DNA of 64,000 nucleotides from Epithemia pelagica (Eukaryota > Protista > Bacillariophyta): assembly GCA_946965045.2 (NCBI GenBank), contig OX337237.1:2728001-2792000 (forward strand), in the 5' to 3' direction. The notes under the pieces are model-generated. The model ran no database searches, was not told the origin of the DNA, and saw only the letters and a list, made by a program, of their open reading frames with translations. The translations under genes were made by a program, and so were the position numbers. Position 1 is the first letter of the stretch. Every line of letters begins with the position of its first letter. Of this stretch, positions 15,769 to 41,857 are shown in pieces.

Positions 15769-16296
15769 TCGGTGCCAACGAAGAGAGAACAGGAATGCTA
15801 CGGGCTTACCGCTTGTCCTGGTCGGGAATCAATCAACATGGGGCACTTTGACTCGAAGCTTGAATAGACCATGTTGAAGGAGGTTCACCCCCGGACATTC
15901 CACCTTCTAATGATGACTTTCTTCGCTCCACCTACTACTTGCTGCTTGTTGACATTGGCAGTTGACAGATCTACTCTATTCCCGGTTCCCGACTTCGGAG
16001 AATAAGTGATGGTGGCTTGGGTTGTTGGGGGAGAGGCACAAAATAGCCCTTGTGCGACTGCTGATTGCCGATGGTTGCTACGAGCTCCACCGCACGAAAG
16101 TTCTTCGCGCAGTAGCCCGTGCTTCACCAACTGATGAGACTTCCGCCCAACGAGATTCACTACACCATACATTTTCCAAGAGTAAAATGAATTGCCCCTC
16201 ATCCACGGTTGATTTTCTCGTAAGGTTACCTCGTACCGATGAAACCTCTCACCATGATACGAGTATGCGATTACCCTTCCTGTACGAGTGGTAAAA

Positions 16297-19038
16297 CAAC
16301 AATCATACTAGTGCAAAATGTACAAACCGCTTCCTAATGATAAGCCTATTTTATGTTACCACCACCACTGCTGCTTGTGGTCGTTGTTATAGGAGATTGT
16401 TGCATTCAGCCGAGACGAGGAGTTCATTGTTGAGTTTGGCCCCGTTGTCGTGGCACCGGATTGTCTCTTTCAGCCAAACCAAGGAGTTGATTGTTGCGCT
16501 TGTTGTAGAACCGTAGAACTGAGAGAGACAGAGATGGAGAGCAGCTGGTGATTGGTGTGTTTGTTGTCATTGTCATTATCGTGGCCCCGAAGTGTTTCAC
16601 TCGGCCGAACCAACCAGTTGATTGTTATGATGGGGACATGCACTGCCACGCGAGGCCAAAACCAATTGGTTACATGTACTTGGTTGTGTCTGTGGTCATG
16701 GTTGTGGGTGTCGTATCATCATCACCATCCGATGGCTCGGTCGTTGTGGTTGTTGGTTTTGTCGTCGTGATTCTCCATCCTGTTCTGGTTGTGGCGACAT
16801 CGGCCGAGGAGGCTGCCAAAAAGTGAAGGGAAGTCTCCCTCCATTGTTGCACCATAACACTACCTTTCAGTTGTTTATTGTTGTGTTCTTAGGTCCAGTA
16901 CAACCTCGCTGTTGTTGTTGTTGTTGTTTCCATCTGTGGTCCTGTCTTGGTCGTTGTCGCCGCTCATCAACTTGTCGAACCAAACAGTTTGCCGCTCCCA
17001 AGGCTCTTCGACCAAGGCCACCACAGCTCCACGGCGTCCACTCCTTCTTCTTCCTCTCGAACTCTGTTGTCGGAAGCAGCCGCACCACGGGCATCACCAT
17101 CCTTGATGGCAGTAGAAGCCCCTTCGACCCACGGTTGACACTTGTTTTGTTAGGACTAGTCAGGCTTTTGTTGCGTTAGAACCACCAACGGACGAGGCGC
17201 GCATTTGTTGTGTTCGGACCAATCGATGACGACGAGTTGATTGATGCGAGAAGAAAGATGCTGGATTCATTATATCGATTGCCATCCTCTTCTTTCCACG
17301 GTCACTTCCTTCGCTCCGGTTGCCAAAAATGGAAGGTCTTCCAAATCTTCCTGTAGCTCCACAGATTTTCACAGTTCATCCCTTCCCGTCCATTCCCTCA
17401 CGGTACACATGAAGATCAAGCTTCCTGGATGGTCGGCGGAGTGCTTGCACCTTTCGTTGGAGGTGCACACCGGCTTGAGTGTGCCATGGTGGTGTTATGC
17501 AGTGCAAAATGACCGTAATGCTCTTCCTACCAAGTTAGAATCACTATAGAAAAAACAGTGGAGGCCCTGAAAGCACGGATTACTGCGCGATGAACTTTCG
17601 TGCGGTGGAGCTCGTACTCCTTGCTACCCGCTCTCTACCTTTCTACGCATATCTGCATTGTACTCCCAGGGAGTACTGCCATTGTACTACTCCTTGTTTG
17701 CTGGTGTCTGTCGAAAGGTGTCCCAAACAATATACGGACTCCGGGGGCCGAAAAATTCCCCCACAGTTAGCCGTGCTTTTCATACTTGTACTCCATTGTC
17801 TATAGTTATCTGGGCCGGTGGTTTAGGAAACCACGGTCATGATACACAACATGGCAAACTCAAGCCGGTGTGCACCTCCAACTAAAGGTGCTAGCACTCG
17901 ACCACCACGGAGTCCTCAGAATCAAGTGTACTGTGACGGAATGAACGGGTGGCGATGGGTTGGCCATTTTGGTGGACCGAAGGCAAGGTTTTTAAGTCTT
18001 CCAAATCCTGGTGGGAAGGAAGCAACAAGATTACCAAGATTGGAGTCGGAGAATGATGTAATGAAGAAAGATTGCAATGAGGGACGACAATGGAAGCTCC
18101 TAAATGGATGGATGAGTCGTGGGAGAGCAGCGGCAAGGACACACGGCAATCAACTGGAGGATTCTCGTCTGAACAAAACAGTCGGCCGCAACAACGACAA
18201 CACCAACAACAGACTGTCTCTCAATGTTACGAGACCACAAGAACCCAGCAACAACCGGCCACCTTGTGGAAGTGAAGGGTCGAGTCCATCATCATGGCTG
18301 CAACAACCGCAACAACCTCAACCACAACAAAGACAGCGACTGATTTGTGGCACCACACGACGAGTTGGACGCGAAGTGAACCATTGTTTCCCAACGACGT
18401 GAAGCCCACGACCACAAAACCAACATCCACCACGACCATTCCATTGGATGGTACAAGACAATGGCACCAATGCATCATTCAACTACTCTAGACCTCCAAC
18501 AAAACCTAAATGCAACAATCCACTCCTCGTTTTGGCCACAACGACAACAACATCCAATGCAACAATCAAAAGCGGGAGGATCTTGACGACAAAACCAACA
18601 GCCACAGCGAGCGAGCCATCGGATGGTAATGATGATACGACACCCACAAACGTGACAACAGATACCACCAACCACACAACCAACTGGTTTTGGCCTCGCG
18701 TAGCATGCATGCCCCCATCGCAACAATCAACTCATCGTTTTGGCCGAACCAAACAATCCGGGGCCACGACAATGACAATGGCACCAAAAGCAACAATCAA
18801 CTGCTCTCCATCTCTGGTTCTTTCAGTTCCACAGTTCTACAACAAACACAACGATCAACGCCTTGTTTCGGCCGAACGAGACAATCCTGTGCCGCGACAA
18901 CGACAACAAATGCAACAACCAACTCCAAGTGAAACCATCACCTATACCCATGACAACAAGCAGCAGTGGTGGTGACTACATAATATAGGCTTATAATTAA
19001 TAAGTGGGTTGTATATTTTGCACTTGTATGATTGTTGT
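16297..19038. repeat. Long imperfect inverted repeat; arms ~16297-16800 and ~18560-19038
   Basis: CAACAATCATACTAGTGCAAAATGTACA... at 16297 is the reverse complement of ...TGTATATTTTGCACTTGTATGATTGTTG near 19038. The shared blocks CACCACCACTGCTGCTTG and CCATCCGATGGCTCG occur in inverted orientation. Confidence 0.8.
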
Positions 19039-19043
19039 AAATC

Positions 19044-19255
19044 TACTTTAATAGCCAGGTTGGGACGAGGAGGAGCTAGGGTGTGAGGAGTGGCTTAACT
19101 CCGAGAAGGGCAATAGCGACGAGGAGTGGACTGCCCCTGTGAGATCCGCGTAAGCGGATCGAGGGGGCAGTCCACGACGAGAAGCTATTGCCCGACGAGG
19201 AGTTAAGCCACGAGGAGCGCCCTGCGACGAGGAGTCCCCCGGGGCTATTAAAGTA
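19044..19255 (+). other. Rod-like nested hairpin (~212 nt) at the left end of element A
   Basis: Nested stems TACTTTAATAGC/GCTATTAAAGTA, GGGAC/GTCCC, GTGGCTTAACTCC/GGAGTTAAGCCAC, GGGCAATAGC/GCTATTGCCC, GTGGACTGCCCC/GGGGCAGTCCAC and GATCCGC-GTAA-GCGGATC, separated by purine-rich G..A loops. Confidence 0.95.
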
Positions 19256-20221
19256 TGTTAGCTTCCTTTGTCACGAGGAGTCGTGCGGGCGCACCCTAGG
19301 TAATTTTCGGTCTTCCTAAGTGATCGTTTATCTCTATCGATACTTAGTAATAGTTGGCCTATTTAGCTTTTTACATTCGCGCCGGTACAGTGTTAGTTAG
19401 GTATCTTGCTTGCGTGCTTGCGCACCTCATCCGATTGCTCGCGTTTCTCAATAAGCAACATACTGTCGTGCTTGCGCAACAAATCCGATGGCTCGCGTCT
19501 ATCAAATAGGTACATACGACAAGTCGTGTTGTTTACATAGGCGTGACACAGGAATACATAGGTAATGTCTATATATTACTTAGATCCCCCACCCCCCAAC
19601 GGACATTCCCACGATAATCTCTCACAGACGACACATTTTGTGCAACAACAATGCAACAACATGATGAGAAAAGGAAGACAACCGACCATGGTGACTCCTC
19701 CTCCTTCTGGTGGAGTTGCTCATGCTTCCAAACAGGTTGATTGTGGAGTCATAGACCTTTGCACCCCTCCTGATGTAATAGATCTTTGTAGTTCGTCTTC
19801 GTCGTCTAGTTGCTCATCAGACTCTTCGGGCGAAACTCTCGTCTTTGTCACCAAGGACAATGCAACAGACGAATGGGATGGCAATCTCTTTCGCCGCTCG
19901 GAACTCTACCACGACTGTACTGGGTCATCCGACGACTTCAGCACCTGTAGTTCCGACCCTTGGATCATGGAAATCCTACAGAGACGGTAAGTTTTCGCCG
20001 CGTTTCCCACCATTGTCGTGTGTTTTCGTTCCAGACGTCTTCCCAAAATTTCAAACCACCTGCCGTGCGCGCGCGCATGGTTGAGTCGCTGTTCTGTTTC
20101 CTACTGATTCCTACGTGTAACCTACGTGTCCGCACTTTCTCGCAAGTGTCACCGTCTTCACTTTCCTCACCCTCATTTTTCATTGTGCATCGTTTTTTCA
20201 TCGTCGTTTCACAGCCTGACC

Positions 20222-23200
20222 ATGGCGACTCGACAATCTCGCCGCCAACTGGAGCGGGCGGCCGCAAGAAACAATGTGGACGCCACAAACTCAACCAATA
20301 ACGTGAACCCGTACCGAAATCCCGGCCGCCCACCCAACAACCGTGCCAATCGTCCGCCATTAACGGAAGTGAACCTTCCTCCTTCCCGAAATCCTCGTCG
20401 ACAACCACAACAACAAGACAACATCCAAGCTACAGAGCAATCAAAGTAAGTGACAGTATGTTTTGTTTCTATTCTTATCTGTCTCATTCTAACCACCATG
20501 TTTCCTTTTTCCCTTCAGCAATGTTGCGAGGCCTGATCCTTCTTCCCGTCGTCACCAGATCGAAGGTCTCGATCTTCCCAATGGCGCCAACGACGCCCTT
20601 CTCAACGCCGCAACGGTTGTGGAATCTTGCAAAGTGGATACCAAGCTTGTATCCCAAGCTTTGGTCAAACGGAAGCATCTGACATGGGATGCCGAAAAGG
20701 GCTCCATGCGGATTGGTGAGGTCACCTTCAACCCGCCCACCATGAACTCTTCTCGTGCACGTTCGTTGGCCGCCTGGAGTCAATATTGTCGTCTGTCTCC
20801 AACCATATACGGCAACAACACCTTCACCATCCGTGACCTCACTGGATGCAAGGCGTCATACGACAAAGAAAAGGCCGCCTCCGTCAACAAATTTTTGGAG
20901 TGTCTTCAAAAGCATCACGAGATGCACTTTCTTCTTGAAATCGTCGAAGATATCGATGAACTGTCGGGTGGAGATACACCAACGCCGCTCCTCTTTCTTG
21001 CTCTCCGCGGAGTGAAGACTCCATCGAAATTGACATTGTTGAATAGTTGCGTAATGGTTTTTCTCGTGAACCATCGAATGCGGGGTTTCAATATGGAAAC
21101 GGATTCGGTGGAGGACCCCAAGTTTTTCTTCCAGCCCAACACAACAATGAAGATGCTGAACCATCTCTTTGCTCTTCTTAAAACACACGGGATCGTGATC
21201 GCTCAAAGTGATCTCAAACATGGGCTTGGCAATTACCATGCCTACCTTGCCGACATTTGGAACAAGGCAGCCCTCGTCCGACCCGAATTTGGCCGCCTAC
21301 CCAATCGTGCACCAACGGCATTCGACGACGAAGAAAAGATGCGGACATGCGAGCCGGAGCTTCGGCCGTTCGAAGACGGCGAGTATTCCACGGCTTTGAG
21401 CATGGGAGTCTACAAGACTTCCCGAGACTTCGGTCTCCGCGGCCCAGAAGTAAGTTGTTGTTTGTTGTTGTTGTATTTGTTGATTGTCGCCGTTGTTGTT
21501 GCTGCTGTTGTCTAACAGTTTGGTTGTTGCATGTTGTCTCCAGATAAGACTACTTAAAGTATCCGATTTAATTTTCAAGGCGTGTCTTGACAAATCGTAC
21601 GGAATGTTGGCTGGGCTTCCCGCGATTATTCTCAAAGAATCTGTGCTTGAGAAATCGTCGCACCTCGCGACGAACAATCTCGCCTTTGATCGAGTCGCCA
21701 ACGATACACAAGACTCGTCGCACATGATCATCGACAACCCAGATGATAAGTTTGCGACGTACAAGATCCTCTTGCACATCATGAAAGTGGCGCACCCGCC
21801 AGGATGGCAGGGTCTGCTGTTTCTAGAGCAGATACCCGCAAAACACCTCAAGGCCCGCAAGGATGGTGCGAAGCACCTCGGTTGGACTGAGCTCGTCCCC
21901 GAGACTTCACAGAATGACGCGGATGGATCTGGCTTCAAGTGTGCGGGTAGATTGGGCGTGAACTGGCCGTTGAGGAATGCCCGTCAACTTGCCATTCGTT
22001 GCAAGTTTGACAACGCCGAGAAGGTGACGTTCCGGACCGGCCGACGCACCGGAATCTCGAACGTTGCCAACTGTGGAGTACCACAGAAGTCGTCGAACTC
22101 CTTCGCCCGTCACAAGTCAAGTGAGGTCAACGTACTGTACCAGGACGTCTCGAAAGAAAATCATGTTCGGACCGTCACGGCCAACTGGTACCGTCCACCC
22201 GAAAAGAGCGACGAGGCCGACAAAGAAAACACGAAGAATGGTACGTAGACTCATTGCATGAATCACTCTTTATACTTTGTTACTAACTACTCTGCTATTA
22301 TGTTTAGATGAGGAGGGATCCAAGAAGAAAGAGTCAAAAACCGCTTCATCCCCCTCGTCCTCGTCGTCGTCCTCCACCGACATTGAGGCCTTTATGAAAA
22401 AGGCCAAGAAGAAGATTCGCCGTCGCAAGGCGTTGCAGCAGCTCAAGGCTGCCAAGAAACAGAATGACGATTCGTCCATCGAAGACGAGGATTCATTGGC
22501 GCGAATCCTTCGTCTCTTGGACGAAAAACCATCCAAGTCGTCCAAGTCGCAAACCCATGGTAAGTTGATTGTTGCTTTGTTGTTTTCTTGGTTGCATCGA
22601 TCTCATTCCGTCTTCTCTTGACCACAGACACCAAATCCAAGAAAAAACGCAAGAAGAAGAAGAAGAAGAAGAGTAAGTCGATCGCGGACTCATCATCATC
22701 GTCATCTTCATCGGATGGCATGCTTGAAGTTCTTTCCCGATGTCAAAAGAAAAAGAAAACTTCTCCGCCCTCTACCATCGTTGGTACGTAGATTGTTTTG
22801 TTTTGTTTTGTTTGATTGTTGCTTTATATGTTCTCACTGCCATTCCCTGTTTCATCACCTTCGTCCACTCCAGTGGCTTCTTCAAAGCCTCCTCCACCAC
22901 CTCCAGTCGAGCATGAAGCGCCACAACCGCCACCACCAGTCGTTGTACCACCACCACCACCAACAACAACAACCACGGTGGCCGTGCAACCACCACCAGC
23001 TACGTCAACAATGGACCAACATGCACCACCTCCAAACAGTGCAACAGTCCAAGCACCAACAACAACCACCGTAACAGCCATGAAACAACCTCCACTGCCA
23101 TCTACTGTTACGGCCACGCATCCACACCCAACAGCAACGACTGAGCAACAGCCACCACCACCACCACCACCAACCATTGCGACCACGGAACCAACGGTAT

Positions 23201-23715
23201 CCGCTGCAGCTCCACCAGCCATTGCGACCACATCAACGTCGCAACCACCTCCACCACCACCAACCATTGCAACCACGGAACTGCCACCACCACCCACAAA
23301 TGTGCCATCGTCAACGGCCCTTGTTCCGACGGAACACCACACCAGCCACCACAATCCCTCTCAGAATCATCACGGTGGATATCATCGCAATGACGGTAGT
23401 CGAGACCGCGGGGTTGATTGTCGTGTGGAGGAGCACCATCGTGTTGCTTATCATCGCAACAACTGGTACTCCCCACCTCCACCACCATCCGACTCGCCGC
23501 CATATCATCCTCATCATCATTCCCACCACCATTCTTCCCGAGGATACCACCACCGCCCGTACACTCCATCGCCACCACCCCCACCGTACTACCGTGACCA
23601 CATCCACCACCGTGGTGGTGGATACACTCCACCACCTCCACATCATCATCATCATCACCATCATCGTGGTTCGCGTTACCATGGCGGTAGCCATGGATAC
23701 GGCTACCACTATTGA
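20222..23715 (+). CDS. Tyrosine recombinase (Crypton-like) with a long low-complexity C-terminal tail, ~1033 aa, 6 exons
   Basis: Exons 20222-20445, 20519-21449, 21544-22240, 22308-22559, 22628-22783 and 22874-23715; all introns are GT..AG and phase-compatible (3102 nt). YR motifs FGLRGPE|IRLL..SD (Arg), EKSSH (Lys), FRTGRRTG (HxxR-like) and ARHKS...VLY (His, with Tyr at 22138). Confidence 0.8.
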
Positions 23716-24388
23716 AGTACCATAGTATTCGGTACGTTTGCTGTTGTTGTTGCATTCTTGTTGATTGCTGTATCATTGTTCTTACCCCTTTATTCACTCT
23801 TTTTGACAGATTGATGTCGCTATTGCTCTTTGCATGACCATTTGGGTGGTGGTCTCTAGCTTGACGTCTCGAAAGGTACGTGAGAATTAGATGATGACAC
23901 TTGTTCCGCGTTCCACTCCACGTTACGTACCAGTTTCTCACACGTTCACGATTTTTGTAATTCTGTCTTGGCATGAAATTTCGTGGTGCATCTCTTTGCT
24001 ACTGAATTTTCCGTGTCGTGTGAAAACTCGTCTGTGTCGTGTTTCAATTATTGCCTACATTTTGATTATTGTTTTTTGGTCTCTGTGTTTCCGTTGCTGT
24101 TGCTGGTGCTTGCTGCTTGATTCGTGTGGTGTTTGTTTGTTGTGCTCTTCTTTTTTCCGTTGGGTGCACCTCTTGTTCGCTTTGTGCTCTTTCCCGTATT
24201 CTCTCCCTGTGGATTTCCTGGGTGTACTACTTTTCTGGGTGTACTACTTTCCTGGGTGTACTACTTTTTCATTTTGGGCTATTCTAATTTTATACACTAA
24301 AATAAAAATCCAAGTACAGTAATTTTTAGGGCTTATGTAGTGTGGGTAGCGTTTTGGGAAAGGTACGACGACGAGTGGTGAAGGTAGT

Positions 24389-25396
24389 AAATCTACTTTA
24401 ATAGCTGAGGGTGGACGAGGAGGAGCTAGGGTGTGAGGAGTGGCTTAACTCCGAGAAGGGCAATAGCGACGAGGAGTGGACTGCCCCTGTGAGATCCGCG
24501 TAAGCGGATCGAGGGGGCAGTCCACGACGAGAAGCTATTGCCCGACGAGGAGTTAAGCCACGAGGAGCGCCCTGCGACGAGGAGTCCCACGGGGCTATTA
24601 AAGTATGTTAGCTTCCTTTGTCACAAGGAGTCGTGCCAGCGCACGCTAGGTAATTTTCAGTCTTCCTAAGTGATCGGCTCTCTCCTTCGATACTTAGGAG
24701 TCGAGAGCCAAATTATTATTATACAATTACGCTGACCCAACTTTTGATAGGGCACTAGGTAATCTTTAATTGTTTGTAAATAGCCATGTCACTTAAGTGA
24801 TCACATCCGATTACATCGGATGAATAATAACGGTTTATGCTTAAGTAACATTTGTCTTACATTTTTTGGAAGGCCAATCAAACTCCGAGGCGTGCCTCGT
24901 TTTTAAATAAGACAACAGAATACTTACGAGTAGAGTCAATGAATGTCCCCCATTACCCCCACGCCTCTTCTCTCCTTTCCCGTTCCCGACCCGACCCGAC
25001 CACGACCACTGAATAAACGACACAAACACAACAACAATGGGAAAGCTGACCAAGGTGAGTCCTCCTTCTCCGGGAGGATGGAGGATGTATCCATAATCCA
25101 TCCACCAACAAAAGCTCTACCAACTCCCAACTCACAATGATGGTGGATTGTTGCGAATTGCGAACCTCTGTCCATTGTCCATTCCTGGCCGTCTTTTGGT
25201 TTGTTTTTCGTTTCGGTGTTTGGGTGGTGCTACTTTTTGTTTCTTTTCCCGGGCTATTTTGCATGATTACACTAGAATAAAAAATCTACGTACAGTAATT
25301 TTAGGGGCTTAGGTAGTGTGAGTGTGGGGAGTGACTTACTCCTCAGTGAGTCCTCAGTGAGTGGGGAAGGGTAGGACGACGAGTGGTAAAGGTAGT
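24389..25396 (+). mobile_element. Non-autonomous copy 'B' (1008 bp) of the YR element, head-to-tail after A
   Basis: Same left end and hairpin (24394-24605) and same right end (...GACGACGAGTGGTAAAGGTAGT), with no long ORF. Collinear with the copy at 35877-37464. Confidence 0.85.
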
Positions 25397-25585
25397 ATTA
25401 ATACTTCCCGGTGTCGAGTCCTTTCAAGGAGGGACCGCCCGGCGCGGAGGGTAGAATGACGAGGAGGGCAATGGTCGAGGAGGGCGCACGCCCGACAAGA
25501 CAATTGCCCGTCGAGTCATTCTCCCGACAAGCCGGGCGCGCCCGACGCGAGAGGACGGCCAGACACAGGGAAGTAGTAAACTTAC
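25397..25585 (+). other. Divergent rod-like hairpin 'C', probably the left end of a related element
   Basis: Stems TTAATACTTCCC/GGGAAGTAGTAA, GTGTC/GACAC, GTCCT/AGGAC, CGCCCGGC/GCCGGGCG, GGGTAGAATGAC/GTCATTCTCCC, GGGCAAT/ATTGCCC and GGGC-GCAC-GCCC, with GAGGA/GACAA loops. It starts immediately after B's GTAGT end. Confidence 0.8.
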
Positions 25586-25804
25586 TCCCTATCAAGCTGT
25601 GTAGGTAGTGAGGATTTCCTGGAAGCCATGTCACAAAGTGTCACACAAGTGTCACACAAGTGTCACACACGAGAGGGAAACCGCGCGACTCGCACGAAAC
25701 TACTTTCCGGTCGTACAAAAATTCCTACTGTAGTATAAAAATGTGAGACGAACTACCTACACAGTCTGGTATGGAGTTAGTGGTGAACCTCCCGTCTCCC
25801 GTAC

Positions 25805-26370: not shown

Positions 26371-26769
26371 CCAGTTCGTGATGTATGAAGGATCAAAAGG
26401 AACCAGGATGGGCCAGCAGACAAAACAAGTCTGGTAACGAGTCCTACAAAAGTGTGTTTTAATATCCGAACTTGCATGGATTCTTTACGCATGGCTGCAT
26501 GCTCGGGGGACAAATCACTCATGGAATTTGTACAATACTTGTTACTACGATGGACTTTTACGGCAACGACGACGCAAAGCAACACCATTGACGAGAGATG
26601 TCTGAGTGTACAGGGGATACGGATACCACAAAAAGTCGGTGTTGTGTCAGTTGGTCATTGATAGTTTTTTCGAATGCCGAGCAGAGCTTGGGTTTGGGTG
26701 GTGTGTCGTTGTGTTGGCGTTTGAGGAGGCGCTCGCTTTGAGGGAGTTCGAAACGGTTTTAATGACCGT

Positions 26770-28695
26770 CGTCATCGCACACCGACACGCCGTTTCCCTG
26801 ACCCCGAACGACACGTTCGTTTTGAGTTGCCGTCGGAGGACAGTAGCTGGAGTACCCATTGTTTGCGTCGCCACACCACTTTTGCGCAGAACGCGTCCTT
26901 CTTTCTCTCAACGACCTCCGTCAACACCGACACCAACTCCTTTGCCACCATGGCAAATGCTCTCGACTGGACACATTGGAGCGACCCAGACTCAGGAGAA
27001 CCGTGCTACCTCGACGATCGATCCTTCTCGCTTCAAGCCACCACAGCACAACAGTTGATTGACGATTGGGACCCACGTTGTTTTGCCTCAAAATCGTTTG
27101 ATGCCGATAATCCTTCTTATTTTGATTTACCAAACATGACTCCCGAAGAGCAAGAAAAATGGTTCATCGCAATGGATCGGGAACTCGACGAACTGGAGGG
27201 CAAAGGAACATTCCGACTGGTGCCACGGAGCAACGCCCAAGGAAAGGAGATTGTCGACACTATGTGGACCCTCAAGAGAAAGCGTCTCCCCGATGGAACG
27301 ATCTCTCGCTACAAAGCACGTTTGGTGGTCCGCGGCGACCAACAAAAGGCCACGTTCGACAAAGAAGACACTTTCGCACCCGTAATTGATTGGCCCTCTG
27401 TTCGTTTATTGTTGATTCTGTCACTGCAACACAACTTGATCACTGCCTCCATTGATTTCAAGAACGCCTTCGTTCAATCCAGCTTGCCTGAACCCATTTA
27501 CGTCAACTTGCCATCAGGTTATGGAAAAGGCCACAACGATAAAGTTTTGGAAGTCAACAAGAGCCTGTACGGCGACTGCCGTGCACCACGTTTGTGGTAC
27601 GACTATTTGAAGGCCCGTCTGGAAACACTTGGTCTCACACCCGACGGAAACGATCCTTGCCTCTTCTGCAAGCCTGGATGCATCATGGTGACGTACGTGG
27701 ACGACGCCATCATCTGTGGAATCAATCAAACGGCAGTGGATGAGCTTCTGAACGGACTCACAAAATTAAAAATGGATTTTGACCACCTTGGCGACTTACC
27801 GACTTACTTGGGAGTTCAAATCACACGCTCCGACGACGGAAGCATGACTCTCACGCAACCACATCTCACTCGTAGCATCATCACAGCACTCGGCCTCACG
27901 GACAGTTCACCCAAGAAAACACCAGCAACACGAACACTCGGCAAGGACAAACACAAGCCTCCCTTCTCCGAAGACTTCAACTATCGCTCTGTTGTCGGAA
28001 TGTTACTCTACCTTGGGAACAACACTCGTCCAGACTGTGCCTTTGCAATCCATCAAGCCGCAAGATTCAGCAACGACCCGCGCGTTACACATGGAGAGGC
28101 ACTGAAACGCATCGGGCGGTATCTAAAGGGCACAAGTACACAAGGTTTGACACTTAAGCCCTCCAAAGATCTCACTTTGGACTGTTTCGTGGACGCAGAC
28201 TTCGCCGGTATATGGGGAAACGAAGATCCCCAGGATCCTTCTAGTGTACGATCACGTACTGGCTTTCTAATCTCTCTCGGCGGTTCCCCAGTGACATGGT
28301 CAAGCAAATTGCAAACGGAGATCGCACTTTCTACAATGGAAGCCGAATATATCGCCGCCAGCACCAGTATGCGGACACTACTTCCACTCCAACGACAACT
28401 ACGGAAAATGACTACCCATCTACGACTTGACAAACCTGGTGCAACCTCCATTACAACCATTTGGGAAGACAACCAAGCCGCATTGAAACTTGCCACAAAG
28501 GATCCCCCTCGAATGACACCGCGATCCAAACATATCGCTGTCAAATACCACTGGTTTCGCTCCAAACTCAATACCGGCCCAAACGGCATCCAAATGAAAC
28601 CGATTGCCACGGACGAACAACTCGGAGATTGTTTCACGAAACCTCTCGACACAACAATGTTTGAAACCTCCCGGAAGAAAATCATGGGATGGTAA
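26770..28695 (+). CDS. Copia reverse transcriptase + RNase H (inverted segment of pol)
   Basis: Motifs YKARLVVRGDQQ, IDFKNAFVQS, KSLYGDCRAPRLW, YVDD, DADFAG, WEDNQAA and KHIAVKYHW. The frame is open from 26770 and the PPT GAGGGCGAG precedes the LTR at 28716. Confidence 0.93.
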   Translation, partial: RHRTPTRRFPDPERHVRFELPSEDSSWSTHCLRRHTTFAQNASFFLSTTSVNTDTNSFATMANALDWTHWSDPDSGEPCYLDDRSFSLQATTAQQLIDDWDPRCFASKSFDADNPSYFDLPNMTPEEQEKWFIAMDRELDELEGKGTFRLVPRSNAQGKEIVDTMWTLKRKRLPDGTISRYKARLVVRGDQQKATFDKEDTFAPVIDWPSVRLLLILSLQHNLITASIDFKNAFVQSSLPEPIYVNLPSGYGKGHNDKVLEVNKSLYGDCRAPRLWYDYLKARLETLGLTPDGNDPCLFCKPGCIMVTYVDDAIICGINQTAVDELLNGLTKLKMDFDHLGDLPTYLGVQITRSDDGSMTLTQPHLTRSIITALGLTDSSPKKTPATRTLGKDKHKPPFSEDFNYRSVVGMLLYLGNNTRPDCAFAIHQAARFSNDPRVTHGEALKRIGRYLKGTSTQGLTLKPSKDLTLDCFVDADFAGIWGNEDPQDPSSVRSRTGFLISLGGSPVTWSSKLQTEIALSTMEAEYIAASTSMRTLLPLQRQLRKMTTHLRLDKPGATSITTIWEDNQAALKLATKDPPRMTPRSKHIAVKYHWFRSKLNTGPNGIQMKPIATDEQLGDCFTKPLDTTMFETSRKKIMGW

Positions 28696-28912
28696 GACGC
28701 CCGGTCGAGGGCGAGTGTCGAAGCAAACAACTGCCAACGAAAAACATCTGTCTCACATACAAAATTGACCTCAGCACTCACCATCACATTCTAGATCTAA
28801 TCGTAACACAATTCTGAAATTTACCAAAACGTACATCTACTTCCACCTACTCCCACTAGGACCAACCATGAACCTTCCAAACGAAAGATCCGACAATGAC
28901 CAACCCCAAGCG

Positions 28913-31831
28913 TGGTGCAGGATCCAACTCTGGCTCGCCCGGTTCATCTGCGAGTTCCAACTCTGGCTCGCCCGGTTCGTCTGCGAGTTCCAACTCTGGC
29001 TCGCCCGTTTCAGCTAAAGGTGAGGGTGGTGGTTCCAACTCTGGCTCGCCCAACTCCAATACGGAAGGTTCGGGCAAATCGGTTGTTTGTGGTCTTGGTT
29101 GTTGTCGATGCTCGCCCTCGACGGTTGGAGAGTCGGAACGAGGAGGCAAGGCGTCGATGTTAGAATCACCGGGAGGCAACCAAGAGGAATCCAAAGGTGG
29201 CAGGGGTCCATCAATAGAAGAGTCATGATCCTCCAGGTAGTGATCACGTGTGATGAAGTCCGGGAAGTCGCCACCGTCGGCAGGGGGTGTCCAGTCGCTT
29301 CGAACGGTGTTAAATAGCTCATCATGAACCACATGGAATTGGGGGCTGATGTGGCCGGTGGTGAGATTTCGAATCAACCCCACCGTTGTCGAATGTTGAC
29401 CGGAGAAACCCAAAAATTGTCCTTGGCGTGCACGAGAGTTCCACTTTGGAAGTTTCTTACCGTCTTGGAGACGAGGATCGAGGACATACGAAGGACAGCC
29501 CCAGACGCGAAGACGGCGAAGTTGGGTGCATGGTTCCTTTAAGCCGGTGAAGATTTCAAGAGGCGACAAAGCAGAGTCTGCGGTGGGAGTGTGGTTGTAA
29601 ATCCATGTGGCGTAGTCCAGAGCCATAGGCCACAACGTTGGGGAGAAACCATCAGGCCAGTGAAGATGGCAATGGATCATCATCGTCCGAGCCATGCTTG
29701 TCACTGTCTGAATGGCCCGTTCAGCGCCCCCGTTTTGATGGTGAGCGCCGACGCCCGAAACAGTATGAATAGGCGGTGGTGTTTGGACACGATCGGCACG
29801 CAAAGACTTCTCAAAGGCGGTGCTGGTAAGAATACCGTTGTCGGTGTGGTAGCGACGAACGGTCCGACCGACTTGGGAGGCTAGTGTTTCGAAGCTAAAC
29901 TTGGAGCGAATGGTGTCGCTTCCTCCGAGAGACACTTGTGGGTAAACGAAGATGGCTCGCGAAGCATGGTCGAAAAACAAGGTGCCGCCACAGAATCGAT
30001 GTTCAGGACGTTCCCGTCCTCTGGTGTTGTATAAACGGCCGCGTACGGATGATTCGAAGTGGTCAACAGACACCAATCCACCAGGTTCGAGTTTGCTACG
30101 GTCAGTTGGAATATGGCCTGCGTCCGGTCGAGGTTGTTTGACTGTGGTTTTGGACGGTCGACGACGTGCCTTTCCCAATAAGCAAGCATGGCATTTAGGA
30201 AGAGGACAGTTGAGGCAACTTGGAGTCCAAGGTTTCAAGCATGAGTCAGGACTGGTTTCTTGACAGTGGTATAGGTTTTGAATACGACGCATGCTCAAAT
30301 GTCCAAGGCGTTGATGATCCAACAAAAGATGTTTCTGGGCTGTTGTAAGGTTGCGGTTATTATCGGAAAATAACTCCGAAGGATGTTCTTGCTGCTGTTG
30401 AAAAGCTTCGGCTAAAGTTGCTGTTGAAGAAGATGTTTGTCGAAGAGGGCATCGGCACCAATTGGCATGTCCACATTTGCAACTTGGATCAGTGCTGTGA
30501 CTGGTAGTATTGAGAGGCTTGTGAACGTTCTTCGCCTTGACAAGAGGAAGGTTGGTCGAATGGTCAATAGGCACGGTTAGGCGGCCACCGATGGCGTCGG
30601 TCTTGATGCTTGCGAAGACATGGTTACTTTCGAAACTTGGAAAACGACGATCCAGATTCAAGTAATCGGCACAGACTTGGGGTGAACAAAGGCGTGTTCC
30701 GGCGGCCTTGCACAGGTTGGCTGGAAAGGTCCAGCGCAATAAGTCGCCGTTTTCGCTGATTGCGTCGTACGCAACAATGCCGGCACCGATGATAGGGAAC
30801 GTGTTTTCGTTGGCTGCTGTGGACATGGCTCCGAAGTTTCCGTATGTCAGTTCCACAAAATCGTCAGTGGACATGGTCAGTCCGTGGGAAGCTCCAGTAT
30901 CCAAAATAATCTGCAGTAAAGGGTCGTTTCCGCTGTTGCAAGAAGGATCGACGTGCATTGTGGGGTCTAGTCGTAGATTGAAGAGCTTGGAGTATGTTGT
31001 GGGTGTCATACAGTCAAAGCGAAAAAGGTTGCTAAAGTCTTCGCCAAGTTCGTGCAATTCTAAATCATCTGGATGTGGAATGATGATGTGTGGTGGCGGA
31101 CAGAAAGGTGCTTGTGTAAAGATGTGATCACGAAGAGTCTTGTCAAACACGTTGCCGAAACCTGTCAGGTGTAAGTATCTCGATTTGGGAACAAAAGGTT
31201 CCTGTTCAGTGTCGAAACCGAGAGAGTCAATCAAGGTAGTCCAACGTGAAGAATCCGAAACAAAGAAAGTCTCAAAAAGTTGACTTGCAACTTGTGTGTC
31301 CGTCAAAGAATCCACATAAGTCTCCCACATCTTGAAGCGTCGCTCGGCTCGGAGATGTTTGCGTCGGATCTCGCCCCAGAACCGAGGAGGTTGTCGAAGA
31401 ACTTGATGGCCTAGAGGGTATGTACTTGAAGCAAAACGGAGCTGGCGACGGTGAATGGCACAAGTAGAGCCGGGAGTGAGGACAATCGCATGATCAAGGA
31501 TCATCAGTCGAGAGTCAAAGCCACTGGGAGGAAAGGCGTAAGGGAGAAGGAAGTCCGAATCAAGCCGAGCCAAGTAAGGAGGAATCAAAGATACAGCCGT
31601 AGGAGCGAAGAAACCAGTTACACCAATCAACCAGGAGTCACAGACCGTTGAGACGAGGATCCAGAGGTAAAAAAGAGAGCCAAGTCGTCGTGCCCGAAAG
31701 GAACGGAACCACGTGTGGAGCAACGGAACCAACAATAAGACTGTCAGGGTGAGGATCAAAGGGCCGAACCAAGTCCAAAAATAGAGACTGGATAAGGACC
31801 AGAGGCCGTAACACCACGACAGAATCTCCAT
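28913..31831 (-). CDS. Copia protease + integrase (N-terminal part of pol)
   Basis: Motifs ILDTGASHG (aspartic protease), HQRLGHLS...C..C (HHCC), VSVDHF / HTDNG / QNGGAER (DDE) and RVWGCPSY (GKGY-like). 33-bp tandem repeats encode EPGEPELELAD near 28920-29010. Confidence 0.93.
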
Positions 31832-31878
31832 GTAAGTAAGAAAAGGGGCATGTGAGCACTGGAGAGATGCTCGCCCTG

Positions 31879-33324
31879 TTAAAAATCCCGGAGGCGAAGA
31901 GAGGATACCGACGCCGTAACACCATCTTGAGAGTTTGCAGTCGAAGGGGGCGTGCTATCGGAGGCATCGTTCGAAGAGTCGGTAGCAGTGGCGGTAGTAG
32001 CGGAGTTAGCCGTGGAGTCGGAGGTAGAAGCTTGAGGACGTCGAGCCTTGACTTTCGACGGATCATGTCGGGAAGTACTGTGGTTACCCCATCGACCTAA
32101 ACCGTCTTTGGTACCATTGGGACACAAACCACACCACCAAATCTTCTTGTCTTTGTTTAAGGGATGAGGGCGCCAATTGGGTTCGCCATCCTTGGGTGGC
32201 GTCGTATCGATCGGAAGGCAATTGCGACGACCAGAGTTGGAATCAGACGTTTTCTTGCTGTCAGACAATTTCTTGCTGGAGCTGGCGAAAGAAGAGCTAT
32301 CGTGACTACTAGTCGGCAACCACTTGTCGGCGAGTAAGAGATCGTTGTACTTGAGGATCACGCGTTCACGGAGCGCCACGAAGTCAAGAAGGATGGGGTC
32401 GTCGTTGTTCTCGAGACTATCAAGAAGGCTGAGAAACTTCGGAACGGTGCAAGTTTGGAGTTGCACAAAGAAAATGTTGGCGACATCCTTCGGTACGTGG
32501 CCACTCACGTTGAGGCGCATGATAGCGTTGTTAAACGTGGCACAAAAGTTAGGAATGTTCTCACCGGGATAGGCACTGACCGAGTGAGATTCCAAACGGC
32601 GAACGATGTGACGGGCGCCCTCGTGAGTAGTGGACATCATCTGATTAAGAATCATGTGGAGGATGAGTGGCCCACCTTGTTCGTTCTGTGGAATCGAGAC
32701 CAAACGGTGTTCAATATCGGAACAAAGCGAGGAGTCGCACGAGGCAAGTAGCAACTCTTGGGTCCAAGAAAGGTTCTGAGGATGAATCTTCTCACTGGTA
32801 TTTTCGGCGTACACTTGATTGCTGAGACGAATCTGGCCTTCTGAGAGAGTACAAGCAGACTCAAGTAGATTCGTAGTAGTCTTGGTGTCGTCAAGCGTGC
32901 CAGTAATCGGGTCGATAGGAAGAATTTGAAAGACGGACTGCATACAGTAGCTAGTCAAACGCCCTTTTAGGTTGAAAAGCTGCATCATCACCTTGTTGTT
33001 GTTCCCGAAGAAATCAGTGTCGTCCGTAATGCGAATGCTAGCTGTTTCCAAAGTAAAGGGAGGCGAAAGGGCAGACACTGCTTCGTTACGGAACTCGAAA
33101 AGGTTCTTCCCGCCCAGAGACTCGCAATACTTAGGTGTTACCGTGTCAGCGAAAGCGCCCAGCTCGAACTCACGACTTTTCTTGGCCGTAAACGTAATAC
33201 CGTTGATCGTAGCGGTGTCGCCATCCATGGTCGGCTTGGCGGCTTTCGTAGGCGTGGAGAAAGGAGAGTTAAGCTTCATCGTCGTTGACAGTAAGGGTTG
33301 CTTCAGAAAGTTTCCAGGTACCAA
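31879..33324 (-). CDS. Copia gag
   Basis: 481-aa ORF between the PBS and pol, with SWTQELLLASCDSSL, GGPLIL, YPGENI and a C-terminal WCGLC...WGNH zinc-knuckle-like motif. Confidence 0.8.
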   Translation of the reverse strand: MVPGNFLKQPLLSTTMKLNSPFSTPTKAAKPTMDGDTATINGITFTAKKSREFELGAFADTVTPKYCESLGGKNLFEFRNEAVSALSPPFTLETASIRITDDTDFFGNNNKVMMQLFNLKGRLTSYCMQSVFQILPIDPITGTLDDTKTTTNLLESACTLSEGQIRLSNQVYAENTSEKIHPQNLSWTQELLLASCDSSLCSDIEHRLVSIPQNEQGGPLILHMILNQMMSTTHEGARHIVRRLESHSVSAYPGENIPNFCATFNNAIMRLNVSGHVPKDVANIFFVQLQTCTVPKFLSLLDSLENNDDPILLDFVALRERVILKYNDLLLADKWLPTSSHDSSSFASSSKKLSDSKKTSDSNSGRRNCLPIDTTPPKDGEPNWRPHPLNKDKKIWWCGLCPNGTKDGLGRWGNHSTSRHDPSKVKARRPQASTSDSTANSATTATATDSSNDASDSTPPSTANSQDGVTASVSSLRLRDF

Positions 33325-34657
33325 ATATTGCTTTGGTTTTGCAATGAGGACGTCCAGTGAAAACCAATTTGTGAAGCGGTCGTGAAACTGTGGGAGTTGA
33401 ACGAATCTGAGACACAGTTCATCTTGAAAGGTAGCGGATGCAATCGGTTGGGAGTCAAGGGCTTTGTTTTCTTGAGTCTCTCCACGATTCGAGGGTTAAG
33501 TAAAGAAAGAGAACCTTGCATGTTCCAAAGCGAGTATGTAAGAAAGAGTATCAACACCCAGCGGTAGCGTTTGGGCTCATAACCTGTCGTTGTGTTGGCG
33601 TTTGAGGAGGCGCTCGCTTTGAGGGAGTTCGAAACGGTTTTAATGACCGTAACCGCTTGGGGTTGGTCATTGTCGGATCTTTCGTTTGGAAGGTTCATGG
33701 TTGGTCCTAGTGGGAGTAGGTGGAAGTAGATGTACGTTTTGGTAAATTTCAGAATTGTGTTACGATTAGATCTAGAATGTGATGGTGAGTGCTGAGGTCG
33801 ATTTTGTATGTGAGACAGATGTTTTTCGTTGGCAGTTGTTTGCTTCGACATGGTGTTTGTTTTCGTTCGGGGGTGGAGTTCTGAAAGACGATCGAACGAC
33901 ATGGAAGACAATGCCCAAGCTTGTAAACAACAGCAAGCCGTGTGTCACGTGTGTCCTCTAGGAAGCTCCTCCATCTCGTGACGAGGCAATCAATGAAACT
34001 TTCTCCACCGTCCGGACCCAACTATGAGCACAAGAAATGCGACTGGTTCAACGCAAGGAGAAAACGAAATTTATGTGTGCCTCGTGCCAGCCCCAAGATC
34101 CCACCACCCACCAAACACATGAATAAAGTGAAGTGAACCTCAAACCTCAACACTCGATTAGAACGACTGTTCGGAGATGCAACATGGAATAGTCTGGTTT
34201 ACGTTCGCGCTCTCCTTTCTGAAAATCTAATTGTCCCCTCTTTGGGGGATCACCCTGAACCCTGACGTCTGAGGTTGCGTGTTGCGTTGTTCGAATTTCG
34301 ACATCGCAATGAGACTACTCTACCCTTGACCGTTGACGTCCTGGATTCCCTCTTTTTGAAGTGCGTGAATCTCGATGTGGCCGCAAGGAGAAGTACGTTG
34401 TACGCTCGTCTGTTTGGAGTACTCGTTACTCGTACTACTCAGTGGATTGGAGTATTCGCACGAATGATTGTTTTCAATCCGAATATAGCATGGAGAACAG
34501 CTCACATAACAATACGAGCGATAAGGACATGAGGACACGATGTCGAAGTCCACAATAGGCACAAAACGTCATCATCGCATATATTTGGCTAGTCGCTGCA
34601 CTATCGACGGTCACAAGTGGGTATCTTGAATCTCTTTTTGCTTTGAAGAATAGCAGC

Positions 34658-35876: not shown

Positions 35877-37464
35877 ACTACCTTTATCACTCGTCGTTCT
35901 ACCGTCGTCGTGCCCTTCCCCACTCACTGAGGAGTGGGTCACTCCCCACACTCACACTACCTAAGCCCCAAAAGTTACTGTACATGGATATTTCATTTTA
36001 GTGTAGTAATCTAGAATAGCCCGGGAAACGAAAAAGTAGGTGTTGGTTGTTGGTGCTGTGTTGTGTCTTGTGTTGTTGTATCAGTCGGAGTGGGAAATGG
36101 GGAACATTGACTATAAGTATTCTGTTGGAGTATTTAAAGAACAAGCACGCCTCGGAGTTTGATTGGCATGCGATAAATGTGGGACAAATGATACTTAGAC
36201 ATTGAGCGTTATAAGTCATCCGATATAGTTGTATGTAATCCCTTAAGTGACCAGGTTATTTACAAAGGATTAAAGATTACCTAGTGCGCCATCATGAGTA
36301 TGGCCAGCGTAAGTCTCTAAGACTAATTAGGCTCACGAGTACTAAGTATACATTAAGTGTACCGATCACTTAGGAAGACCGATAAATACCTAGAGCACGC
36401 TGGCATGACTCCTCGTGACAAAGGAAGCTAACATACTTTAATAGCCCCTGGGGACTCCTCGTCGCAGGGCGCTCCTCGTGGCTTAACTCCTCGTCGGGCA
36501 ATAGCTTCTCGTCGTGGACTGCCCCCTCGATCCGCTTACGCGGATCTCACAGGGGCAGTCCACTCCTCGTCGCTATTGCCCTTCTCGGAGTTAAGCCACT
36601 CCTCACACCCTAGCTCCTCCTCGTCCCACCCTGGCTATTAACGCCATACGTAAGGAACGCGTTTTAAGCCTAACGGATTAGCAAATAAACTACTCCCATA
36701 AAACTTTAGCGATATATGGTTTGTGTCCCATAAACTGCTCCCATCTTAACACGGTTTGAAAACTCCCAGTTTTAATTTCGAGTACAAATTTATTCATAGT
36801 GAGAATTTTTTGTCATTTTAGTCGCTTTTCTCGAACTTGAGCGGCCATCCGCGATGACCATGAGAGACAATGAGGGCGGACAATGAAAATGGCATGGATC
36901 ATCTTCCAATGATGCCAAACCAGGTCAGAATGGATGAAGGAAAGTCAATTGATCAAGACAGATGGTATGTGGAGGCGAAAGTTGACCAAGGAAAGGTTCA
37001 ATGTGTCGAAAAAGGGTCAATGCTGTGAAGCAGGCAAAAACATGGTCTGAGAGAGGGAATTGCCGAATGCTCAACAGAGGTGCTGTCAAATCACAAATAA
37101 AGACAAAGTCCTATAGTTCATATTATTTTACACCAGAATGGAAGGTCTTGACATTTGCTGTTGGAAATTGAGTGTGTGCGTACTGCTCAAAGTTGGGCCA
37201 TGGTCGATGGGATGAGAAAATCACAAAAATCATCCAAGTTTTGATACACGAAACGACTGTTATAATTTCAAAATCAGTGTAGACTATGATATATGAAAAT
37301 GTTCAAAATTCCACAAACTATTAGAATTACAAGTGAAAAAGACAATGACGTCTATATTCCAACTAGTAGATGTCTTCAAAGTTATGGGAGGAGTGTATAT
37401 ACTGCTCGAATTTATGGGATCAGTATATATACTGCTCCCTTACGTATGGCGTTAAAGTAGATTT
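35877..37464 (-). mobile_element. Non-autonomous copy of the YR element (~774 bp net), interrupted by a MITE
   Basis: The reverse complement has the same left end (AAATCTACTTTAA|TAGCC), the same hairpin (36434-36641) and the same right end (...GACGAGTGATAAAGGTAGT). Confidence 0.88.
36642..37451. mobile_element. 810-bp MITE with 14-bp TIRs and a TTAA duplication
   Basis: Perfect TIR CGCCATACGTAAGG at both ends, flanked by TTAA (36638-36641, 37452-37455). Removing it restores GGCTATTAAAGTAG, as in copies A and B. Subterminal TCCCATAAA repeats. Confidence 0.9.
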
Positions 37465-40900: not shown

Positions 40901-41851
40901 AAAGTCCGTAGCGAATATTTGCCCGCATGTATTTTGATAAAGAGACTTGGTCTCTGAGAACAGAGTGTCAGTGTACACATCTGCTCGTAATCGACGATGT
41001 CGCAATTGGTATGCGGTATGTTTCAAACGTCGACTGCCGCCTCGATCGGTGAATTCACGGACACCAAGTTGTGTCGTCTGATTGAACGTCCGTTCTGCAC
41101 TGGGGAGTCCAATATTCCATCGTTGTGCCAATTCATTCGGACGTACTGTCCCCTTTCGCCTATGTCCAATGTCTGAGACGTGGACATGGATGGCGCGATT
41201 GTTGACTCGGAGAGTCTTGGTCATTGCGAGATTGATCGTCCGCTCACGTGTTGCATTTACTACGTTCGATTGTATCGATTCCCTGAGTGTTCTTTCATCA
41301 ACATCTGGTGTTGAGTCATTCGGTTGCCACTCGGGTCGTTCATTCGTCATATCAATACGACAGGAAGGATCGATTGAATCAATCTCCTCCTTCGTGGGCT
41401 TGCGTGTGCGAAATTGGCTTAAGACACCGATTAGGTCGAGAGGGATTCGCAATTCTTCCATTTCTGTATCCCTTGCAATGATGCTGTGGGATCTTTCATT
41501 TCGGTCCCCTGGTTTCAAGTACTTCAAGGGGATATCATTAACTTCAATCCCGGCCTCCCGCATTTGATTCGGATTAAGAAGGCACTTGTCTTTTAATTGC
41601 GGCAAGTGTAGCGCTTGGTGGAAATAAAGGAGGAACGTTTGGCCAGTCTCTGGATCATCATATGCCAAAACACCAGTGATGACGCTGGCCTCTTTAATCT
41701 TACCCAGACTCTCAACAAAACCACTGACATCAGCCGTATCAGTCTGATACAGCACGTAACAGTTGCCCAGACAGCAAGTGTCGGCATGACTGTCGAGCTC
41801 ACACCGGATTAAGGGAACCGAAATCTCACGAGAAGTTGTTGCAGACATCAC
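37949..41851 (-). pseudogene. Copia pol (protease, integrase, chromo-like segment, RT, RNase H) with a premature stop
   Basis: Motifs ELDSHADTCC, YTDTLF / PDNAPEL / NQNLAE, DVKMDFTRKARYVAGGH, DIAGAYLNA, VYTDD and DSDHAGD. An in-frame TAG at 38276-38278 interrupts SVET*TFGSEF. Confidence 0.9.
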
Positions 41852-41857
41852 ATTGTG

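Follow-up and report, generated by a model that had tools for sequence, protein, structure and literature searches.

The hairpin at 19044-19255 (+) is a conserved, strand-specific end structure of diatom elements that carry a Cre-like tyrosine recombinase. It lies in a window of 64,000 nucleotides of Epithemia pelagica, which is the whole stretch of DNA analysed here, and belongs to a full-length, recombinase-encoding element of 5,350 bp (element 1; 19038-24387, +), where it begins 6 nt inside the left element end (19038). The elements of this family fit the definition of Cryptons by content and boundaries. Positioned exactly at the junction between element and target, the rod is a possible eukaryotic equivalent of the folded sites of bacterial integrons. 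The reading tentatively preferred here, a serious possibility rather than a settled matter, is that the rod is a cis-acting recombination site which is used as folded sense strand, in the manner of attC, and that the family represents Crypton-like DNA transposons of raphid diatoms.

Measured from foot to foot, the 212-nt rod of element 1 consists of seven to eight nested stems with a GTAA loop at the apex and a foot helix of 13 bp. With RNA parameters, the plus strand folds at -139.9 kcal/mol, while shuffles of the same stretch give -69.1 +/- 4.5 kcal/mol (z -15.8) and 0/200 of them reach the native fold. The minus strand is predicted at -114.3 kcal/mol, i.e., the plus strand is favoured by 25 kcal/mol; under DNA parameters, the plus strand reaches -66.3 and the minus strand -60.3 kcal/mol. 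The interior loops are of the types GAGGA/GAGGA, GA/GA, AA/GA, GA/AA, and GTGA/GA, with purines accounting for 52 of the 56 loop bases, and the stems contain three G.T wobbles, each of which is A.C on the opposite strand. A preliminary description of this DNA had proposed nested stems closed by a GTAA loop, internal-loop strands starting with G and ending with A, and T.G wobbles pairing on this strand only, and had suggested folding both strands; every one of these features is recovered, the loops being mostly of the GA/GA type and the plus strand folding better under either parameter set. A structured noncoding RNA had been among its options and Rfam among its proposed searches. Here, no family was matched at gathering score in the whole 64-kb window, and the sole match within 18950-19400 is a chance-level miRNA outside the rod (E 3.2), which leaves the noncoding RNA option with no match to a known family.

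The apical 46 nt of the rod are found exactly at three sites of the window, 19128 (+), 24478 (+), and 36516 (-), the expected number being 0. The corresponding rods R1, R2, and R3 share an invariant core (19063-19238, +) with 0/176 differences in all three pairwise comparisons, while the adjacent 92 nt (19256-19347) differ at 10-16 positions (11-17%). At these flank rates, the probability of an unchanged core is 2e-9 to 2e-15. Both the identity of the core in the copies at 19k, 24k, and 36k and the divergence of the adjacent sequence had been noticed by eye in the preliminary description, which was right on the three copies and overlooked a fourth rod of another subfamily (25396-25581). Even in the related element on contig L002 of the ENA assembly ERZ21939226, the core differs at only 1/176 positions, although that element is no more than 83% identical overall. 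Across the window copies and L002, 0-1/176 differences in the core thus stand against 8-17% in the flanks.

Besides the L002 copy, element 1 has a 98.3% identical copy at L001:6797-12114, likewise on another contig of ERZ21939226; the flanks of both are unrelated to those in the window. Alignment of the ends in five copies revealed no terminal inverted repeat (TIR), no long terminal repeat (LTR), and no target-site duplication in element 1. A candidate 8-bp target duplication (AATCTACT) was rejected, as every copy has these same bases as its conserved left terminus. Directly downstream of element 1, two further elements follow head-to-tail. Element 2 (24388-25395, +; rod at 24394-24605) is a gene-less copy of 1,008 bp that has only the left ~310 nt and the right ~140 nt in common with element 1, while element 3 (25396-25781, +; rod at 25396-25581) is a 386-bp miniature of the other subfamily, 97.7% identical to L006:15445-15830. 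An additional gene-less copy, element R3, lies in opposite orientation at 35878-36641 (-), with its rod at 36434-36641; it matches element 2 at 87% identity over 530 nt and has the identical core. Elements 2 and R3 as well as the 386-bp miniature have retained the rod and the right end. LTRs might be suspected behind the R1/R2 direct repeat of 5,350 nt, but were rejected: in L001 and L002, the full-length copies carry a rod at the left only, and their right end is followed by unrelated DNA. What repeats is the start of the next element in the tandem. At the left boundary of R3 (36641-36655, -), the usual first ~10 nt are absent or atypical, the flank is not G-T-N-G, and the foot helix comprises 9 bp instead of 13.

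The only enzyme encoded by element 1 is a tyrosine recombinase; neither a reverse transcriptase (RT), RNase H, Rep/HUH protein, helicase, or DDE transposase nor any other domain was found among its ORFs by Pfam. The recombinase gene (20493-22248, +) is composed of exon B (20493-21449), a 94-nt GT..AG segment (21450-21543), and the catalytic exon C (21544-22245 plus stop), with the start located further upstream. Removal of the 94-nt segment restores the reading frame, there are no in-frame stops inside either exon, and the Entomoneis protein P0012, which derives from a transcript, has the two exons directly next to each other (residues 501 and 508). The low-complexity tail is in another frame than in the longer ORF of L002, which reflects either one change or a second intron. 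The two exons were used separately as queries. Exon C defines a family of 86 representative proteins among 1.8 billion, whose named members come from diatoms only, and which conserves R-x-x-R, a histidine 23 residues on, and a tyrosine 9 residues further, a spacing that we take to be that of box II in lambda Int, XerD, and Cre. By sequence alone, known families are matched below threshold only: there is no above-threshold match to Pfam DUF3504 or Phage_integrase, the latter being sub-threshold in 5/38 family members (best E 7e-4); the PDB search arrives at XerA with a sub-threshold E of 0.19; a fold search with exon C alone gives nothing significant; and a profile word search finds no further named relatives. 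The AlphaFold model of the relative P0095 (581 residues), by contrast, matches Cre over both domains (E 3.5e-4, probability 1.0, TM 0.58 (target)), followed by XerH, Tn1549 Int, IntI, XerA, and the Crypton-derived domain of QRICH1. The matches to the QRICH1 domain (9hjt_H, E 4.9e-3) and to IntI (2a3v, E 0.039, rank 36, behind Cre) are weak. Judged from this model, the enzyme of these elements is a Cre-like tyrosine recombinase, with R-x-x-R, H, and Y as its assigned residues. The model of P0095 (L006:10001-11746) also contains a low-confidence insert (residues 315-345) exactly at the position of the 94-nt GT..AG segment, which is probably an in-frame intron read through by the gene caller.

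Some further observations concern the surroundings of the elements. The window contains ORFs of Copia type (RVT_2) and for a pseudouridine synthase; the named relatives of the synthase are all from raphid pennate diatoms, the best being from Entomoneis/Amphiprora (50%). The Copia-type ORFs (RVT_2, gag_pre-integrase, SH3_retrovirus) at 26600-33950 and 38279-43273 are nested between the recombinase elements as separate insertions outside element 1, and an inverted pair of 99% identity (28716-28912 and 33654-33850) is found in the Copia-type region. In another inverted repeat pair (16296-16776 and 18575-19038; 80%), which has no match in the other loci compared, the right arm stops precisely where element 1 begins. 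Just upstream of the rods of two subfamilies, a sequence of ~720 nt is shared between the window (36736-37451, -) and L006:7765-8479 with 80% identity; it is probably the tail of another element type in tandem. Within element 1, two direct repeats of ~30 nt, 60 nt apart, lie between rod and recombinase gene (19400-19500), and downstream of the gene there is a Pro/His/Thr-rich ORF of 299 codons (22816-23712, +) in a region of strong C-over-G skew (-0.23), for which Pfam gave no match.

The structure is conserved far beyond the copies in the window. Thirteen rods were compared, all near relatives originating from the single raphid-diatom assembly ERZ21939226, where seven subfamilies possess a rod; one environmental relative (L011/L012, from two metagenomes) adds to these. 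The rods of L002, L003, L004/L005, L006, L007, and L014 are 159-213 nt long and precede the recombinase gene, in the same orientation as the gene. The recombinases of L003, L004/L005, L006, L007, and L014 are 39-52% identical to that of the window, and even in the L011/L012 relative, with an identity of 26-30%, the rod is present in the same placement, ending in L012 only ~110 nt before the recombinase ORF. In 12/12 unrearranged rods, the sense strand folds better than its complement, by 8-27 kcal/mol. Among 117 interior loops from nine distinct rods, 52 are 2x2 loops of the GA/GA type, 8 are GA/AA, 3 are AA/GA, and 5 are GAGGA/GAGGA, a typical arrangement being a single G-C pair between two GA/GA loops. 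Half of the GA steps in these nine rods stand in a C-GA-G context, which is favourable to sheared tandem G.A pairs in DNA as well as in RNA. On the sense strand, GA/GA loops can close as tandem G.A pairs; the complement carries C.T/T.C in their place, so that only the sense strand folds well.

The stems of the rods, too, bear the marks of selection. In an alignment of six sequences, 89.4% of the stem cells are paired, and double, compensatory changes are found in 19/68 pairs, compared with 11.4 +/- 1.9 in shuffles (0/500) and with 2-6 in slid-register controls; the inner stems are conserved in sequence, while the outer stems co-vary. The preliminary description had concluded that selection acts on a folded single strand, had proposed covariation across genomic copies as a check, and would have given up its view if genome-wide copies mutated stems and loops at the flank rate without compensation and the recombinase showed no preference for the folded strand. 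On the first of these points, the opposite is observed in the rods compared: the core is nearly unchanged next to diverged flanks, the stems are compensated, and purine loops are kept on the same strand in diverged subfamilies, all of which supports the proposed selection. No rod was seen in the 0.8-1.2 kb of upstream sequence present on the short contigs of the distant relatives L008-L010, L013, and L015, exact scans of metagenome and viral contigs for the conserved inner stems gave 0 matches, and the metagenome contigs L011/L012 exhibit no circular overlap.

One of the thirteen rods departs from the strand rule. In the rod of the 98% identical element copy in L001 (L001:6804-7015), the apical ~100 nt are inverted: the sequence runs direct to the fifth stem, is replaced by its exact reverse complement from there until well into the opposite arm, and then is direct again, whereby one GA-type loop has become fully paired. 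The strand rule is, therefore, not absolute. Being non-reciprocal, the change is what a template switch inside the quasi-palindrome would leave behind, rather than a programmed flip/flop. A flip/flop of the parvovirus type was rejected on the grounds that 12/13 rods have one and the same orientation and that the L001 variant is partial and non-reciprocal.

Most insertion sites share a short motif. Directly 5' of element 1, the flank ends in the tetranucleotide G-T-T-G (19034-19037, +), and G-T-N-G makes up the four bases before the left end in 12/13 insertions. The elements themselves terminate similarly, with G-T-A-G or G-T-C-G in subfamily 1 and L004/L005 and with T-T-A-G in the L006 subfamily. 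In 4/13 insertions, the left flank is the right end of another element, arranged head-to-tail. These data fit a conservative exchange at a short shared motif, and exchange at G-T-N-G, shared between targets and element ends, would explain the head-to-tail arrays.

The pairing of the element end with the flank of the rod is a new observation of this analysis. The segment immediately following the rod of element 1 (19256-19300, +) is complementary to the right end of the element (24343-24387, +), at which the homology among the five copies stops and which contains the CGACGAG motif known from the rod loops and the terminal G-T-A-G. Two-strand duplex prediction gives -36.3 kcal/mol for these two segments, and, likewise from unjoined sequences, right-end pairing in every copy with known ends. 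The natural tandem junction (24320-24700) folds accordingly: there, the stretch immediately behind the rod of element 2 takes the right end of element 1 as its partner, which extends the rod by ~35 pairs and further GA loops. The pairing of right end and post-rod segment was examined in six subfamilies. As a predictive test, the best partner of the post-rod segment was sought within 9 kb downstream in L003 (z -6.5), L004 (z -6.0), L007 (z -4.1), L014 (z -5.0), and L006 (z -9.4); these partners differ in sequence from one another, and the 3' end of each is the element terminus (...TAG or ...TCG). The right end of element 3 is the best partner of its own post-rod segment (z -4.5), and element 2 behaves alike; in element 1 (subfamily 1), the right end ranks third (z -3.5). 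Where the 10-bp right-end helix of element 1 has three G.T pairs, elements 2 and R3 have A-T. From this pairing it follows that, in the joined form, the crossover (...G|TA...) would be positioned in the 5' arm of a rod of ~290 nt, in a partly paired stretch with the 10-bp helix on one side and the 13-bp foot on the other.

These features can be combined into a scenario in which the folded sense strand is the substrate. Upon joining of the ends, either in an excised circle or in a head-to-tail pair, the sense strand would fold into the ~290-nt rod, as single-stranded DNA or as an extruded arm. The 3' arm would pair with both ends of the element, with the left end through the 13-bp foot and with the right end through the 10-bp helix and its GA modules, so that the crossover would come to lie in a partly paired centre between two helices, which is the layout of a tyrosine-recombinase core made from one strand. 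The GA/GA tandem mismatches would hold the sense strand in its fold, whereas the complement with its CT/TC mismatches and the double-stranded palindrome would be left far less prone to folding or extrusion. In this way, the G.A modules would determine strand choice and orientation, and the genome would be spared a perfect long palindrome. Finally, the recombinase would exchange the site with G-T-N-G targets, including the terminal G-T-A-G of other elements, giving rise to head-to-tail arrays. We infer two things here: the folded form would be DNA, and it would be the substrate of the recombinase. Of the options raised in the preliminary description, the attC- or CTX-like substrate gains most, through the rod adjacent to the crossover, the pairing of the right end with the 3' flank, and the Cre-like fold. 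Taken as a whole, with a Cre-like enzyme, G.A modules that set the strand, both ends on one splint, and cassette-like arrays, integron- or CTX-type single-strand recombination in a eukaryote, the diatoms, is a more speculative proposal and somewhat doubtful.

Several points count against the folded-strand reading. A source of the single strand was not found among the ORFs of element 1 (no Rep/HUH, helicase, or RT by Pfam), and three G.T pairs within one 10-bp helix suit RNA better than DNA. The third rank of the right end in subfamily 1, the inverted apex of L001, the rodless distant relatives, and the short double-strand core that is legible at the junction also weigh against it.

The alternative that survives best, although it is rather unlikely, places the selection on a structured sense RNA, which would be either the leader of the recombinase mRNA or a transcript across the junction of right end and left end, with roles in protein binding, stability, export, or control of recombinase expression. 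The rod is always upstream of the gene and on its strand, at a distance of ~110 nt from the ORF in L012; G.U-type wobbles and tandem G.A pairs are common in RNA, where three wobbles in the 10-bp right-end helix would be mild; and the strand asymmetry of 25 kcal/mol calculated with RNA parameters is large. Yet only 6 nt separate the rod from the end of the element, too little for a single integrated copy to hold an upstream promoter of its own, the right-end pairing requires a junction-spanning or full-length transcript, and Rfam has no match. That the gene-less and the 386-bp copies keep the rod indicates a role in mobility rather than in expression.

Less probable still is a conventional double-strand DNA site, with the recombinase using a short core at the circle junction and the long imperfect palindrome being an accessory, such as a binding array of CGA(G/C)GAG direct repeats, a cruciform-forming architectural element, or a replication origin of the circle. 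At the double-stranded junction, a short conventional core site with inverted arms of ~7-9 bp around the crossover is legible, and CGACGAG recurs on one strand in both arms and in the right end, reminiscent of iterons. Cryptons are, moreover, generally assumed to move as double-strand circles (PMC3212892), which favours this alternative and counts against the folded-strand reading. A binding array, however, needs neither palindromic spacers nor co-variation, and nothing in a double-strand site calls for G.T replacing A-T on one strand only or for complementarity between right end and post-rod segment in every subfamily; a replication gene was not found in the element.

A splint of the DIRS kind appears very unlikely. 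It would require a single-stranded copy made by an enzyme supplied in trans, and, for circularisation, the 3' arm of the rod would hold the 5' and 3' ends of this copy side by side. Both sense-strand termini indeed pair with this arm, a role proposed in DIRS1 for the internal complementary region, which can pair with either terminus, and DIRS elements also use a tyrosine recombinase. The present elements, however, have neither RT nor RNase H; inverted terminal repeats, split direct repeats, and other terminal repeats of the DIRS/Ngaro/PAT type were not found in element 1; and the part of the complementary segment is taken by the 3' arm of a rod at the element end.

That the rod has no function is hardly credible. 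It would then be a quasi-palindrome kept up by copying, gene conversion, and template switching, with its conservation reflecting recent amplification; the window copies are young, and L001 demonstrates template switching on the palindrome. Template switching, however, raises the complementarity of the arms, as seen in L001, yet the GA/GA loops persist across recombinases of 26-52% identity; in addition, the unchanged core amid diverged flanks and the compensated stems are at odds with such an origin. A guide-type (bridge- or omega-like) RNA was rejected, with the same GA loop motifs in all subfamilies, a target motif of four bases, and no ORF of TnpB/Fanzor size.

Compared with known systems, the folded-strand rod would behave most like integron attC and CTX attP(+) and would insert like IS200/IS605, while being a member of none of these groups. 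With attC it has in common the imperfect palindrome whose structure is conserved above its sequence, the better-folding strand that bears the non-Watson-Crick marks, the crossover in one arm at a G|T step, a linear unit whose two ends divide the site unequally, one holding the bulk and the other a small piece, the head-to-tail accumulation of units, and the tyrosine recombinase. It differs in its eukaryotic host, in the intron of spliceosomal type within the gene, in the length of the site (210-290 nt versus ~60-140 nt for attC), and in the nature of the strand marks, which are symmetric tandem G.A modules here and extrahelical bases in attC; single-base bulges in the rods are few and not conserved, and the attC layout of R''/L''-L'/R' boxes with strand-marking extrahelical bases is not found. 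Furthermore, the rod is 5' of the gene, each autonomous unit possesses its own recombinase, element 1 lacks an IntI-type integrase at a platform (intI, attI, Pc), and the fold of P0095 matches Cre better than IntI. The forked hairpin of CTX-phi attP(+), which is used by XerCD, resembles the joined rod in having two half-sites folded from a single strand with an imperfectly paired centre, whereas here there is no phage, no single-stranded DNA genome, and no dif-like target, and the rod is far longer, with regular G.A modules. With IS200/IS605 elements such as IS608, the diatom elements share the lack of TIRs and of target duplication, the oriented insertion 3' of a tetranucleotide, a similar tetranucleotide at the end of the element, and strand-specific folded ends. 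The hairpins of IS200/IS605 are, however, only ~20 nt long, are present at both ends, and are bacterial, and those elements employ an HUH Y1 transposase in place of a Cre-like tyrosine recombinase; element 1 has no ORF or Pfam match for such an enzyme.

Among eukaryotic elements, the Cryptons resemble them in content; the CryptonS group of stramenopiles is known from a diatom, and Cryptons have a tyrosine recombinase only and no TIRs or LTRs (PMC3212892). These properties, together with short direct repeats at the boundaries and non-autonomous derivatives, are shared by the elements described here. The ends of CryptonS, however, mostly share TATGG, while G-T-N-G is found here, and the paper in question reports no conserved noncoding sequence and never mentions a hairpin (PMC3212892).

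The rod family represents a large, sharply defined, and testable cis element for Crypton-like elements. To our knowledge, almost nothing is known about how Cryptons recognize their own ends, and we know of no conserved cis sequences for them in the literature. Equally, folded-strand recombination is so far known to us only from bacteria, in attC, CTX phage, and IS200/IS605. The structural grammar of the rods, helices punctuated by GA-(G/C)-GA modules, is unusual, and tandem G.A modules are a device of which we know no example from any recombination site. If the folded-strand reading is true, the use of folded strands by tyrosine recombinases would be either convergent or ancient across the domains of life; orientation-specific insertion without target duplication and the tandem arrays would find an explanation; and the rod would provide a structural signature for the detection of such elements in algal genomes.
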